A stretch of DNA of 64,000 nt from Hemiscyllium ocellatum (Eukaryota). The DNA is taken from the NCBI RefSeq assembly GCF_020745735.1, contig NW_026867509.1, positions 496,001 to 560,000 on the forward strand, in the 5' to 3' direction. A model generated the notes under the pieces. It saw only the letters and a list, made by a program, of their open reading frames with translations, did not search any database and was not told the origin of the DNA. Position numbers and translations under genes: made by a program. Below are positions 1,583 through 58,911 of the stretch, piece after piece. Every line of letters starts with the position of its first letter. Position 1 is the stretch's first letter.

Positions 1583-1621
1583 AGTTTTTGCACGAAATTC
1601 CACCTGTTTCCTGTCACCGTG
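1583..1621 (-). other. 23-RSS of TRAV-like pseudogene
   Basis: Minus strand: heptamer cacggtg (1621-1615), 23-nt spacer, nonamer gcaaaaact (1591-1583). Confidence 0.9.
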
Positions 1622-2143
1622 TCTCTCAGCCCGCAGTAATATACTACACTGTCTGACAGCCGCAGTCCACTGATAGTGAAATTCCCCTCGTGTTTCGAAA
1701 TAGCCAGAAATGCAGAAAATCTATCGCCAACACTGTGTGATTTGAAAACATTTTCATGTGATGACTTGCAGCTAAATGATGTAAGGGATTCTCCACCGTC
1801 CTGATGGTACAGACGGCACAATTTTGAGAAATAGAAGGCAGCCGAAATCAAATAACCGAAGTAAACTGTTACTGAGTCTCCTTCAATCTCAGTTACTGTA
1901 ATTGGTTTAAGTGAGACCTAATGCGCACGACGAACCGCTGCAGAAATTTAGATTTGGAAATATATATATATATTAGCGTTATATTCTGCAATCAATGCAA
2001 AGGCATTTATGGCAAATGGAGGGAGAGTACAATTGAAGAGCAAGTTGTTCGTGTCATCGACAATTGAGAATTGTTAGAGTGGAGAACTAACCTGTTAAGA
2101 GAGCTGAAGCAGTGAGGAATGACTTAGTAATAATACCTGACAT
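1622..2143 (-). pseudogene. TCR alpha-type V pseudogene (leader 2143-2092, V exon 1937-1622)
   Basis: Leader MSGIITKSFLTASALLT followed by GTTAGT, and a tttctgcag acceptor. V exon ends EGNFTISGLRLSDSVVYYCGLRD + RSS. It has an in-frame TAG near the exon start, the first Cys replaced by Phe, and the WYRQ motif reading LYHQ. Confidence 0.88.
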
Positions 2144-8053: not shown

Positions 8054-8249
8054 TGATTTTGCATTGCTCGCTCTGTGCACCATGATACTGTGTCTGTAAT
8101 CCCACCATTATTCAGTTTTTGTACTCGTCTCTGCGTGCTTTGTGTCACCGTGTCTATAAACTCTACCATTATAAGCCATTTTTAAGCTTTCTCCGTGCTC
8201 TATATATTTGTGTCTGTAATCACACCATGTTCTGGTATTTGACAGCTCT
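8054..8249 (-). repeat. Tandem 60-bp 23-RSS array, distal part
   Basis: Heptamers start at 8086, 8146, 8206 and nonamers at 8054, 8114, ~8174, 8234 (exact 60-bp period). Best unit: cacggtg-23-acaaaaact (8152-8114). Confidence 0.85.
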
Positions 8250-9568
8250 GTTGAAAATGTGTTGCTGGTTAAAGCACAGCAGGTTAGGCAGCATCCAACG
8301 AATAGGAAATTCGACTTTTCGGGCATAAGCCCTTCATCAGGAATGAGGAGAGTGTGCCAAGCAGGCTAAGATAAAAGGCAGGGAGGAGGGACTTGGGGGA
8401 GGGGCGATGGAGATGTGATAGGTGGAAGGAGGTCAAGGTGAGGGTGATAGGCCGGAGTGGGGTGGGGGCGGAGAGGTCTGGAAGAAGATTGCAGGTTAGG
8501 AGGGCGGTGCTGAGTTGAGGGAACCGACTGAGACAAGGTGGGGGGAGGGGAAATGAGGAAACTGGAGAAATCTGAGTTCATCCCTTGTGGTTGGAGGATT
8601 CCCAGGCGGAAGATGAGGCGCTCCTCCTCCAGCCGTCGTGTTGTTATGTTCTGCCGATGGAGGAGTCCAAGGACCTGCATGTCCTCGGTGGAGTGGGAGG
8701 GAGAGTTAAAGTGTTGAGCCACGGGGTGGTTGGGTTGGTTGGTCCGGGCGTCCCTGAGGTGTTCTCTGAAGTGTTCCGCAAGTAAGCGGCTCGTCTCCCC
8801 AATATAGAGGAGGCCACATCGGGTGCAGCGGATGCAATAGATGATGTGTGTGGAGGTACAGGTGAACTTGTGGTGGATATGGAAGGATCCCTTGGGGCCT
8901 TGGAGGGAAGTGAGGGAGGAGGTGTGGCCGCAAGTTTTACATTTCCTGCAGTTGCAGGGGAAGGTGCCGGAAGTGGAGGTTGGGTTGGTGGGGGGTGTGG
9001 ACCTGACGAGGGAGTCACGAAGGGAGTGGTCTTTGCGGAACGCTGATAGGGGAGGGGAGGGAAATATATCCCTGGTGGTGGGGTCCGTTTGGAGGTGGCG
9101 GAAATGACGGTGGATGATACGTTGTATACGGAGGTTGGTGGGGTGGTTGGTGATAACCAGTGGGGTTCTGTCTTGGTGGCGGTTGGAGGAGCGGGGCTCA
9201 AGTGCGGAGGAGCGGGAAGTGGAGGAGATGCGGTGGAGGGCATCGTCGATCCCGTTTGGGGAGAATCTGCAGTCCTTGAAGAAGGAGGCCATCTGGGCTT
9301 TGCGGTGTTTGACCTGGTCCTCCTGGGAGCAGATGCGGCCGAGACGAAGAAATTGGGAATATGGGATGAAGTTTTTACAGGGGGCAGGGTGGGAGGAGGT
9401 GTACTCCAGATAGCTGTGGGAGTCAGTCGGTTTATAGTAGACGTCTGTGTTGAGTCGGTCACCTGCAATAGAAATGGAAAGGTCGAGGAAGGGGAGGGAG
9501 GAGTCTGAGACAGTCCAGGTGAATTTGAGGTCGGGATGGAAGGTGTTAGTAAAGTTGATGAACTATTC
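8250..9568 (-). mobile_element. Neptune-type PLE, 5'-truncated (RT C-terminus, Cys-rich linker, GIY-YIG)
   Basis: ORF 9292-8366 contains CNCRKCKTC and IIYCIRCTRCGLLYIGET. The in-frame upstream sequence reads FHPDLKFTW...LPFLD. Confidence 0.92.
8310..8343 (-). ncRNA. Minimal hammerhead ribozyme motif (mutated)
   Basis: ttc-CTGATGA-a-gggc-ttat-gccc-GAAA-aGTC-gaa. An A replaces the usual C after GAAA, breaking the ACGT palindrome. Confidence 0.65.
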
Positions 9569-9667
9569 ATCAGTTTGAGAGCTCTATCCGTACTCAGTGA
9601 CACTGAGTCTATCATTCCCAGCATGTTTCGGTTGTGTGCAACTGTCTCCTAAAGCTGTATCATTGTA
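9569..9667 (-). repeat. Tandem 60-bp 23-RSS array, proximal part (V RSS + second RSS)
   Basis: tacaatg-23-acacaaccg (9667-9629), 21 nt, then ctcagtg (9607-9601) with a 22-23-nt spacer and tcaaa. Heptamers are 60 bp apart. Confidence 0.7.
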
Positions 9668-9972
9668 TGTGAGATGAGTGCGGATTCAATGCGCAGTTAT
9701 ACGCAGTGGAGTCATTAGGCTGTATTTGCGAGACCAGTAACGAACTGATGTCCGACACAGGATCAATAGAAACAGAAATTCGCCCGCCACTAGCATTTTA
9801 TTTATTGTGCTCTCCGGACGTGTACCTTTGAACTGGATATTTCAGCGCTTGTCATGGGTACTGACAGAACCAGTAAACTATGTCCTGAGGGAGCCCTGAA
9901 TATTCACAGCATAAAGAAATGGTGTCACCTGAGAGTTGTAGGGGTGGATTCTGGACGTCACGTAACTGGAAT
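9668..9972 (-). pseudogene. TCR delta V pseudogene, supporting-V-like family
   Basis: cccacag acceptor; GDTISLCCEYSGLPQDIVYWFCQYP*QALKYPVQRYTSGEHNK*NASGGRISVSIDPVSDISSLLVSQIQPNDSTAYNCALN. Two stops and a 5' frameshift; no leader seen upstream. Confidence 0.85.
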
Positions 9973-32866: not shown

Positions 32867-33003
32867 TGCTGTGGTTATAATCCTCAACACATTCAAGTCT
32901 TTGCACAGCTTTCGAAGTGCTCTATCACTATGTCCTCACCATCAGTATCAGCATGTTTTTTTTTACAGCTCTCTCCGTGCTCTGGATGACAGAGTATGCT
33001 GTG
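32867..33003 (-). repeat. Decayed tandem RSS array 3' of supporting-type Vdelta
   Basis: catagtg-21-gcaaagact (32932-32896) and cacagca (32873-32867), 59 bp apart. Spacer agagcacggagagagctgt and linker gaatgtgttgaggattataac resemble the 8-9.7-kb array. Confidence 0.6.
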
Positions 33004-33265
33004 CAGTTGTACTGTGGAGATACGTAAACGACTGATTATCACTGCAGAGTCAGTATCAGCAGAAATTCTTCCTCTAGCTGTGTTTTCTGTATTCTGCTCT
33101 TCTGAAGTGTATCTTTGAAGCAAGTATTTCAGAGACTGTCCTGGGCGTGATCGTTTCAGTAAACTGTGTACTGACAAAACCCTGAAAATTTATGGCTTAA
33201 TATCACGGTGGCAGCTGCAGCAGAGGTTTGGAAAGTAGGACTCTGGGACAACAGAGACGGAGAAT
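33004..33265 (-). pseudogene. Supporting TCR delta V (NAR-TCR type) pseudogene
   Basis: ttccacag acceptor; DSPSLLSQSPTFQTSAAAATVILSHKFSGFCQYTVY*, frameshift, RSRPGQSLKYLLQRYTSEEQNTENTARGRISADTDSAVIISRLRISTVQL. CDR1 Cys TGT at 33176-33174; no leader seen. Confidence 0.82.
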
Positions 33266-34299: not shown

Positions 34300-34880
34300 C
34301 CTGCTAAGAAAGATACGGGCGATGAAGGATTGTATAGATCGGGTTTTTTGTCTTTAGAACGCATGAGGTTGAGGGGAGACTGATAGAAGTTTATAAGATT
34401 GTGAATGGCTTGGAGAGAATGGAGACTATTGAGCGTGTTTTCTCCAGGGTGGAGGGTTAAATTACTAGGGACACAGGATCAAGGTGCGAGGGGGGAAGAG
34501 TTCAAAAGCGATATGCGATGCAAATTTTTCACTACAAGGTAGGGGAGTGCCTGGATTGCGTTATCAGCGGATATGATGGGATCACACAAAATATCAGATT
34601 TCAAAACACCTGAAAGAAAACATTAATATGAGTGGAATGAAGGGATACGGATCCTATGTTTGAAGACAGTTTAAGAAAATATGTTCAGCATGTATTAACG
34701 GACGCTTCAACAGCTTAAAACCCTTTTCCTGTGCTGCATTGTTCTTTTTACGGTTCTTCCTTTTCCACAAACTTTTCCTCTTGAAGAAAAAATTAGCCCC
34801 GACTTCTTCAATCCATCTCCTTCTCCGAACTCCCAGAACCGTCAAACAATGCTTGTAAATATCTCTTCATGCTCTATCAT
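34300..34880. mobile_element. CR1 LINE 3' fragments (two pieces, opposite orientation)
   Basis: RT C-terminal/3'UTR-like sequence (aggttgaggggagactgatagaagtttataag...). Confidence 0.55.
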
Positions 34881-49352: not shown

Positions 49353-50184
49353 GGCTTTCTACCTTGTCCGCTGCAGCCCTGCAATAATGTGGGCTCCACA
49401 GCACAGTAATGCACAGCGTTGTCAGAAATTAGAATAGTTAAGTCGGTGATCTTCTCAGCTATTTCAAGCGTAGAATAAAATCCAGCAGTGATGATGTTAT
49501 CCCTGCGCACATCACTCCCAATAAGCCAAAGCATGTGCTGTGGCCGCTGCCCAGGACGTTTACTGTACCAGTTCACAAACATTGGGTGGCATGGTGGCAC
49601 AGTGGTTAGCACTGCTGCCTCACAGCGCCAGGGACCTGGGTTCAATTCATGCCTCAGGCGACTGACTGTGTGGAGTTTGCACGTTCTCCCTGTGTCTGCG
49701 TAGGTTTCCTCCGGGTCTTCCGGTTTCCTCCCACAGACCGAAGATGTGCGGGTCAGGTGAATTGGCCATGCTAAATTGCCCGTAGTATTAGGTAAGAGGG
49801 GTATGGGTGGGTTGCGCTTCGGCGGGTCGGTGTGGACTTGTTGGGCCAAAGGGCCTGTTTCGACACTGTAAGTAATCTAATCTAATCTAAAAAAAAAGTG
49901 AGAGATGCTGGTCTTCACGATGAAGATTAGTTTCGTATTCTTTGCATATTCAAACGTCTTTTCAGCAAAGGGCTGTCCCACTGTATCCTGCTGTCTCTAT
50001 TCTAACATATAAAATGTAATAAATTAAAATTGGTGTGAGCCTGATATTGATCAACATACTCGTCATAACGACATCAACCAACAACTAACATTTATATTGT
50101 AGCCATCATTCCTTTTCTTAGAAGAAAATACGTACTCAGAAAGTTTAAAATGATGAGAAACTGTGTGAGACATTTCTCCAAGAT
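49353..50184 (-). pseudogene. TCR alpha-type V pseudogene split by an HE1 SINE
   Basis: Leader-like (ATC)LEKCLTQFLIILNFL followed by GTACGT (50184-50136); DTVGQPFAEKTFEYAKNTKLIFIVKTSISH, SINE, MFVNWYSKRPGQRPQHML...DNAVHYCAVEP. RSS cacatta-23-tagaaagcc at 49391-49353. Confidence 0.8.
49584..49897 (+). mobile_element. HE1-type SINE, young
   Basis: tRNA-like head, TAATC repeats and A tail. Confidence 0.93.
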
Positions 50185-58096: not shown

Positions 58097-58612
58097 ATGG
58101 TAGTATTTTATATTCATTATTTGCAACTGCAGCGCTCATAACTGGTAAAACATCCTAAAGCTACACACTCTTCGCGTACAGACATTACTCACGTCGTTTC
58201 AAATGCACTTTCTCTACGTTTAAAAAGTGTGCAGTCACAGATGGTAACACGTACCATAGCAATGATAACATATTGAAGTCTTATGTTTCTAAATTTCTGC
58301 AGGTGTTGATGGTGCAGACTCAATCTCGCAGGAGGTAGTCTCAGCAATGAAATTTGAAGGCAATGCATTGAATTTTATTTAAGCGTATTTGGCCACTGCA
58401 ACTAATGAGCATTCTTTGGATTTATATCGTCAGGATCGATACAGAGCACTGTCATTCTCGATCCACATCACTACCTATGGCGATGTTATCAAAGCTGAAG
58501 GTGTAGAGCTTCGATTTTTGACTAATATTGACAGTGGGAAAAGTGTGGGACGTTTCACCGTCCGTGATATGCGGTTGTCTGACAGCACAATGCAATACTG
58601 CGCACTGAGAGA
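58097..58612 (+). pseudogene. TCR alpha-type V pseudogene
   Basis: Leader 58097-58144 has a 1-nt deletion, then GTAAAA. Exon 58303-58612: VDGADSISQE...FI*AY...LYRQ...FTVRDMRLSDSTMQYCALRD. RSS is decayed. Same family as 1622-2143 and 55876-56607. Confidence 0.85.
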
Positions 58613-58911
58613 TGCCAAGAATGGAACTCGTCGTAGCCTCGTAAAATATTGTGACATTAACAATAATATCATCGTCCAAAATACCGTTTCTCACAATACT
58701 CAACAGGCATTTTCCTGAATTTCAATTGATGCTTCCTCCTGGGGAAGCACCTCCTGCGATTGGAATAGAACAGACGCCCAACTAATGGTTGCTACAAAGT
58801 CGAAGAAATCTGTTTTTGAAGCGAATTCGTTTCTATAGAAAATACTCATCTGAAATCTAAACCATAAAAGTTGTAATTTATTTCATTGCATTTTGCTGGT
58901 CTATTATTATG

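Follow-up and report, generated by a model that had tools for sequence, protein, structure and literature searches.

The DNA that follows the supporting V-delta pseudogene V2, in the 64,000-nucleotide stretch analysed here (the window), very probably holds the decayed remains of RAG signals of the 23 type, arrayed head to tail and inherited together with the NAR-TCR supporting V-delta. In better-kept relatives the repeating unit is about 61 nt long and consists of CACAGTG, a 23-nt spacer, ACAAAAACC and a linker of about 22 nt, with up to five such units directly after the V. Every component of the V2 cassette has decayed, its NAR V and supporting V as much as its signals, and because no unit has a usable heptamer-spacer-nonamer, the V2 array would do nothing today. 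Two copies from outside the window are compared with it throughout: L001, a 1007-nt contig of an ENA metagenome assembly in which a supporting V is followed by five signals, and L002, also from a metagenome assembly and the same as L003 in sequence, in which similarity ends after two units. The window contains the following features.

38203-37952, minus strand: NAR-TCR V pseudogene with stop codons (tblastn with P0007, 51% over 84 aa, E = 2e-20)
33265-33004, minus strand: supporting V-delta exon V2, a pseudogene (translations, tblastn, phmmer, alignment to L001 and L002)
33003-32997, minus strand: CACAGCA, coding-end string (GCACAGCA in L001 and L002)
32996-32988, minus strand: remains of the first heptamer, unit a (profile and pairwise alignments)
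32987-32965, minus strand: unit a spacer, 23 nt, the last 19 nt identical to L001 spacers at 18/19 positions
32964-32956, minus strand: unit a nonamer relic, a run of nine A (6/9 to ACAAAAACC; the alignment puts a 4-nt deletion here)
32955-32933, minus strand: unit a linker, 23 nt, containing AAACATGCTG and ATGGTGAGGA and lacking the usual TTACAGA
32932-32926, minus strand: unit b heptamer CATAGTG, with the third base of CAC lost
32925-32905, minus strand: unit b spacer, 21 nt, which is 2 nt short (profile alignment)
32904-32896, minus strand: unit b nonamer GCAAAGACT, a 6/9 match
32895-32874, minus strand: unit b linker, 22 nt, with the G of later units at its second base
32873-32848, minus strand: unit c, heptamer CACAGCA (32873-32867) plus 19 nt of spacer, 20/26 in register
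9975-9578, minus strand: paralogous supporting V pseudogene V1 (about 9975-9700, two stops) with array units 1 and 2 (9667-9578) (tblastn, profile)
8249-8033, minus strand: the rest of the V1 array, namely the end of unit 2 and units 3-5, period 60 (autocorrelation, profile)

To judge from its sequence, V2 is a dead supporting V-delta within a dead NAR-TCR cassette, a reading based on its family matches in phmmer and tblastn, its broken frame and the NAR V pseudogene upstream. We ran an exhaustive phmmer search of 1.84 billion representatives with the longest open piece of V2. Nine proteins were found at E ≤ 0.001, six of which have a supporting-type V domain 49-63% identical to V2, and in five of these six (from Heterodontus, Cetorhinus, Mustelus and Scyliorhinus) that domain is preceded by a NAR-type V. 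The best V matches are gene models in which a NAR-type V is fused with a second V, from Heterodontus francisci, Cetorhinus maximus, Mustelus asterias and Scyliorhinus canicula. A word-based protein search with the V2 piece returned no match. In the reverse direction, tblastn with the NAR-TCR models of the four shark species placed their second V on 33266-33159 and 33153-33004, in different frames, and protein homology stops at 33004, after ...VQL.

The V2 exon begins at 33265, where it adjoins an acceptor, cacag, on its 5' side; this acceptor and the ATTCT.. that follows align with the acceptor of L001 and with the TVTA/DSSSL junction of the models. Its translation requires two frames, with a frameshift near 33155. 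Across both frames Cys23 is replaced and Trp41 is gone. The extra-cysteine motif GFCQYT in CDR1 is retained (frame 1 reads KFSGFCQYTVY); the same motif occurs in P0001, P0003 and P0005, and GLCQYT in P0007 and P0008. Alignment to L001 and L002 reveals that about 38 nt are absent from the 3' end, corresponding to the SDSAVYYC codons and the next few residues and including Cys104. The NAR V pseudogene lies 4.7 kb upstream of V2 on the same strand. Between the two, FDGSGSS.. at 34810-34843 (minus strand) is the sole, weak candidate for a decayed NAR J, for which relatives have DGSGTVVTVTA; no convincing signal precedes the candidate, and no clean NAR J was found in the window.

The original prediction had placed a V at 33265-33004, followed by CATAGTG, a 21-nt spacer and GCAAAGACT and, 59 nt further on, by CACAGCA. 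All of these elements are present on the minus strand; the spacer it quoted lies at 32983-32965 and its linker within 32895-32874. It also assigned the V to the right family, that of the supporting V-delta, but overlooked both the truncation of the exon and the damage to the first signal, for which it took the CACAGCA at 33003. In the relatives, the bases homologous to that string are the last ones of the coding sequence and the first two of the heptamer. After the gap of about 38 nt, V2 resumes at GCACAGCA, identical in L001, and GCACAGCATA, identical in L002. Because the true heptamer of L001, CACAGTG, begins 5 nt past CACAGCA, with a 23-nt spacer and CCAAAAACC after it, we read the CACAGCA at 33003 as a conserved coding-end string and not as a true heptamer.

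In V2 the heptamer proper is broken by a 4-nt insertion and two substitutions, C to T and G to C. The reading CTCTGTC (32994-32988) preserves the 23-nt distance to the nonamer relic. We considered whether the truncation of V2 is the footprint of an open-and-shut RAG reaction and rejected this reading, since the 38-nt gap is found 5' of the GCACAG that V2 retains, away from the cleavage site. A MAFFT alignment that placed unit a on the end of the V was likewise set aside in favor of the profile and pairwise alignments.

Two further observations concern the first heptamer. Its first base is T, not C, in V1, V2 and L002 (..CAGCATA.., at window positions 32995-32996 and 9667-9668 and at 830-831 of L002); L001 has CACAGTG. 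V1, V2 and L002 are all clearly dead. The T may go back to one inactivating mutation that all three share, or the site may have been hit repeatedly. In addition, the RefSeq models P0003 (Heterodontus), P0005 (Cetorhinus) and P0008 (Scyliorhinus) end in ...S(Q/R)(R/H)TAQ-stop, which is germline V read into the first heptamer (ACA GCA CAG TGA). The annotation has therefore fused an unrearranged NAR V and supporting V as one protein. The heptamer carries an in-frame stop both in L001 and in these three models.

Behind the coding end, unit a is followed by unit b after 60 nt and unit b by unit c after 59 nt. The spacer of unit a gives a BLAST match of 92% identity over 24 nt to 8179-8201, in the V1 array. 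Its linker (32933-32955) contains ATGCTGA and ATGGTGA 12 nt apart, which looks like a small internal duplication combined with a deletion, together keeping the 60-nt period. The linker of unit b agrees with the consensus of the outside copies over TGAAT..TGAGGATTA. Past the first 26 nt of unit c, similarity falls to noise level in the second half of the unit and the next 61 nt (32847-32752), and neither nonamer nor linker can be recognised there. For this reason we rejected unit c as a full terminal unit comparable to unit 5 of L001. As we read it, the V2 array ends at unit c and comprises units a and b in full plus 26 nt at the start of unit c. The periodic similarity that had been expected past the first RSS is accordingly real for unit b (E = 4e-6) and the start of unit c, but the rest of unit c is noise.

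The array at 8-9.7 kb belongs to V1, a second supporting-type V that tblastn with the NAR-TCR models located at 9953-9640. It consists of five decayed units, and its autocorrelation peaks at 60 and 120. Unit 2 is split by an insertion of about 1.3 kb (8250-9573), which is flanked by the 12-mer AGAGCT(C/G)TCAAA at 9585-9574 and 8249-8238 on the minus strand; the pair looks like a target-site duplication. Three more V-like segments occur in the window, at 1618-1917 (minus), 49379-49576 (minus) and 58407-58703 (plus), with 26-36% protein identity to the supporting V. The first of them is a conventional V that ends in ...YYCGLRD and has one good 23-RSS at 1621, CACGGTG-23-GCAAAAACT. It is the only conventional V in the window with a readable RSS, and no second unit follows it.

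The 60-61-nt unit of heptamer, 23-nt spacer, nonamer and linker of about 22 nt recurs behind V1, V2, L001 and L002. This supports the array as a trait of the supporting V family, rather than a one-off, as the original prediction held. The better copies have their own defects: in L001, otherwise nearly intact, TGA stands at the extra-cysteine codon, and the YYC of L002 contains TAA, so that every DNA example of the array examined is a pseudogene or nearly one. The TGA of L001 falls at 310-325, where relatives have GFCQYT. A database protein, P0004, reads W at this place and runs through all five signals, and it must therefore have been called with a code in which TGA is no stop. A word-based protein search with the V part of P0004 found one protein, which led to L002, and the same search with the array-encoded part found P0004 itself only. 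A first pattern scan of metagenomes yielded no loci, though L003 ought to match the pattern. The ten metagenome loci of a second pattern scan were treated as chance, each being a single match within the searched stretch with no neighbouring unit.

Every linker (L001 575-600 and each later unit; window 32942-32933) also contains ATG/GTGAGG, a good look-alike of a 5' splice site, followed by YAG (TTACAG or TTTCAG) just before the next heptamer. The pair has no evident role and may simply be part of the conserved unit.

How well the array has been kept is best seen in L001 and L002. The signals of L001 start at 534, 595, 656, 717 and 778, a period of 61 repeated four times, and the 22-nt linker is conserved between units. 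Comparison of L001 with L002 gives 84.1% identity in the exon and, in register, 83.6% over the first two units. The intron of the same pair, compared over the 150 nt before the exon, is at noise level. Among the four loci, the 5' flanks of five of the six pairings and the 3' flanks of all six have no significant alignment. The exception is a weak local match between the 5' flanks of L002 and V2 (score 29, z 3.8, 0/200 shuffles). Since exon and units are alike in identity while the flanks are at noise, the array has been preserved about as well as the exon. Either constraint or co-conversion could explain this preservation.

The explanation we prefer for intact cassettes, tentatively and at clearly less than even confidence, is that the extra signals would raise RAG capture of a V that has neither leader nor promoter of its own. 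A usable joint would come from the V-proximal signal only. A distal cut would leave the proximal 23-RSS in place, free to join once more with a D or J (12-RSS) further downstream. More doubtful, to our minds, is the proposal that the tandem 23-RSS array is a selected device of intact NAR-TCR cassettes, which would provide both RAG capture and nested signals for further joining.

The main alternative, a serious contender that we place only a little short of an even chance, is a neutral minisatellite that was seeded by one RSS, was homogenised by gene conversion together with the exon and has no role past the first signal. Mismatches in L001 amount to 3% in the heptamer, 8% in the spacer, 9% in the nonamer and 12% in the linker. 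Such nearly even conservation of signal and non-signal parts is what a minisatellite would display, and it fits recent duplication or gene conversion as well as selection for RAG use. The equal identity of exon and array between L001 and L002 is likewise as expected for a common conversion tract. However, four of the five heptamers of L001 are CACAGTG and the fifth, CACAGTA, is one base off, and the nonamers are 0-2 bases off ACAAAAACC, which is much to retain without selection. The choice between capture and a neutral minisatellite concerns the role of intact arrays and leaves the identity of the V2 copy unchanged.

The second issue is the age of the array. Exon identity is 63% between V1 and V2, compared with 69% (V1) and 75% (V2) to L001. 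The two window copies are thus old and separately decayed, and recent copying between them is unlikely. A second cassette with the array, long separated and independently decayed, argues for inheritance from an ancestor of the family and not for a local accident. We infer that an array of at least two units was already present in the common ancestor of V1, V2, L001 and L002 and that it was maintained as well as the exon while the flanks drifted.

It has also been proposed that the array predates the duplication that gave rise to V1 and V2, and two characters speak for this order. Among the scorable units, the second linker base is A in all three that come first in their array and G in all eight that come later, unit b of V2 included; unit a of V2 was left out of this count, as its 4-nt deletion makes the state ambiguous. 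Had each array grown separately out of its own first unit, the same change would have been needed four times. In addition, ATGCTG is found only in the first units of V1 and V2, and the later V1 units retain ATGGTG. The proposal came with a suggested phylogeny of the units, which we built from 12 units and 60 columns; no branch was supported, and with these data the tree cannot decide the ancestry of the array. The two characters are single sites, and they point with moderate strength to an array older than the V1/V2 split.

A competing account of the V2 copy would have its array arise after the V duplication, by local tandem duplication of V2's own signal, with the likeness between loci due to parallel growth. 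A tandem duplication of this size (about 60 nt) happens easily, unit numbers vary by locus (2.4 in V2, 5 in V1, 5 in L001 and at least 2 in L002), and the unsupported unit tree is compatible with such growth. We nevertheless regard this account as unlikely: unit b has the G of later units in the four loci, the linker, which lies outside any RSS, is common to the loci, and the later V1 units have ATGGTG where the first units of V1 and V2 share ATGCTG.

Taken individually, the V2 motifs are weak. A CAC-anchored RSS scan of the window does not list the V2 signals, Tandem Repeats Finder at a minimum score of 30 reports no array at either the V1 or the V2 locus, and ungapped autocorrelation behind V2 has no clear peak (0.35 at lag 62). 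Within the V2 locus alone, the similarity of unit a to unit b is matched by 28 of 2000 shuffles, which is weak support, and that of unit b to unit c is not significant.

An nhmmer profile made from the seven units of L001 and L002 only was scanned against both strands of the 64-kb window. Unit a is the best match (32992-32948, 28.3 bits, E = 9e-8) and unit b the second best (32932-32878, 23.0 bits, E = 4e-6). The next-ranked matches are units of the 8-9.7-kb array, and matches are confined to the regions behind the two supporting V copies. The maximum among 21 controls, consisting of the reversed window and 20 Markov-resampled windows, was 12.6 bits. The resemblance of the quoted spacer and linker to the units at 8-9.7 kb, which had been noted by eye, also stands, with only 0-2 of 1000 shuffles matching units a and b as well. 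For the in-register match of unit c, 4 of 2000 dinucleotide shuffles were equally good. Finally, AAACATGCTG had been proposed as common to both V copies after the first nonamer; counting both strands, the window contains it exactly two times (32958-32949 and 9628-9619), with 0.12 occurrences expected, and each copy directly follows the first nonamer of V1 or V2. Taken as sequence, then, the V2 motifs are confirmed to be more than chance.

That the motifs are merely RSS-like strings in AT-rich DNA, as the failure of the scan, the repeat finder and autocorrelation to give anything clear might suggest, is very improbable given profile scores far above the control maximum, an a-to-b spacing of exactly 60 nt directly behind a supporting V and a 10-mer unique to the two loci. 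Chance is ruled out for units a and b and may account for the second half of unit c.

Continued use of a V2 signal by RAG is equally hard to credit. RAG cleavage depends most on the CAC triplet of the heptamer. The CACAGCA of unit c retains this triplet, but no nonamer lies 12 or 23 nt past it; unit b combines CAT with a 21-nt spacer, and the V that could be delivered is frameshifted and lacks Cys104. None of units a, b and c has the CAC heptamer, 23 ± 1 spacer and A-rich nonamer near ACAAAAACC that together define a functional 23-RSS. Unit a falls short both as CTCTGTC and as CACAGCA with a 32-nt spacer, and a simple consensus RSS test rejects all three signals. By the usual rules, which rest on established RSS requirements, none of them should be a RAG target.

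Teaching on V(D)J recombination assigns a single signal to each coding end. A family of V genes with up to five complete signals would raise the question of how RAG picks among adjacent signals, and also of whether the NAR-TCR, which rearranges twice, requires assistance the second time. If the array is indeed a selected device, it would be the first natural multi-signal recombination target, and the relics at V1 and V2 would date the device to the age of the supporting V family. The V2 copy adds a limited point only, since it appears to be dead itself and to have no present function. In the searchable literature, outside of which lie the primary NAR-TCR papers (Criscitiello 2006, Deiss 2019, Ott 2021), we found no description of tandem signals behind a supporting V, and the reviews consulted on NAR-TCR do not mention them. 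Provisionally, we consider the tandem array new to the literature.

Each better-kept unit has exactly the make-up of the canonical single 23-RSS (CACAGTG, 23-nt spacer, ACAAAAACC) and the right orientation, reading from the V coding end. In contrast to the canonical form, the signal of the supporting V is repeated head to tail together with a linker of about 22 nt, at a period of 60-61 nt, and all signals of V2 are degenerate. The conventional V at 1917-1618 has the normal single form.

The surroundings of V2 match the doubly rearranging NAR-TCR cassette of cartilaginous fish (Criscitiello, Saltis and Flajnik 2006, PNAS 103:5036, as cited in PMC12227049 and PMC6795676). Upstream there is a V of the NAR type, and GFCQYT is present. 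The supporting V-delta, probably leaderless, begins at a splice acceptor with D-S-x-S-L, and the fused NAR V and supporting V models of four sharks are the best protein matches. Unlike a working cassette of this kind, that of V2 is dead throughout.

Other V regions also carry extra RAG targets for further recombination, such as the VH-replacement heptamer in FR3 and the kappa-deleting element/RS. The likeness lies in the tie between additional RAG targets and one V region. Those elements, however, are single, usually heptamer-only or isolated, and sit inside the V or far downstream, whereas the supporting V array is made of complete tandem 23-RSS that abut the coding end.

Minisatellites, which grow by unequal exchange, share with the array a unit of about 60 nt, a copy number that varies by locus and the even similarity seen in L001. 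They differ from it in that the unit here is a complete recombination signal, the array is bound to one V family, and first and later units have position-specific characters common to the loci.
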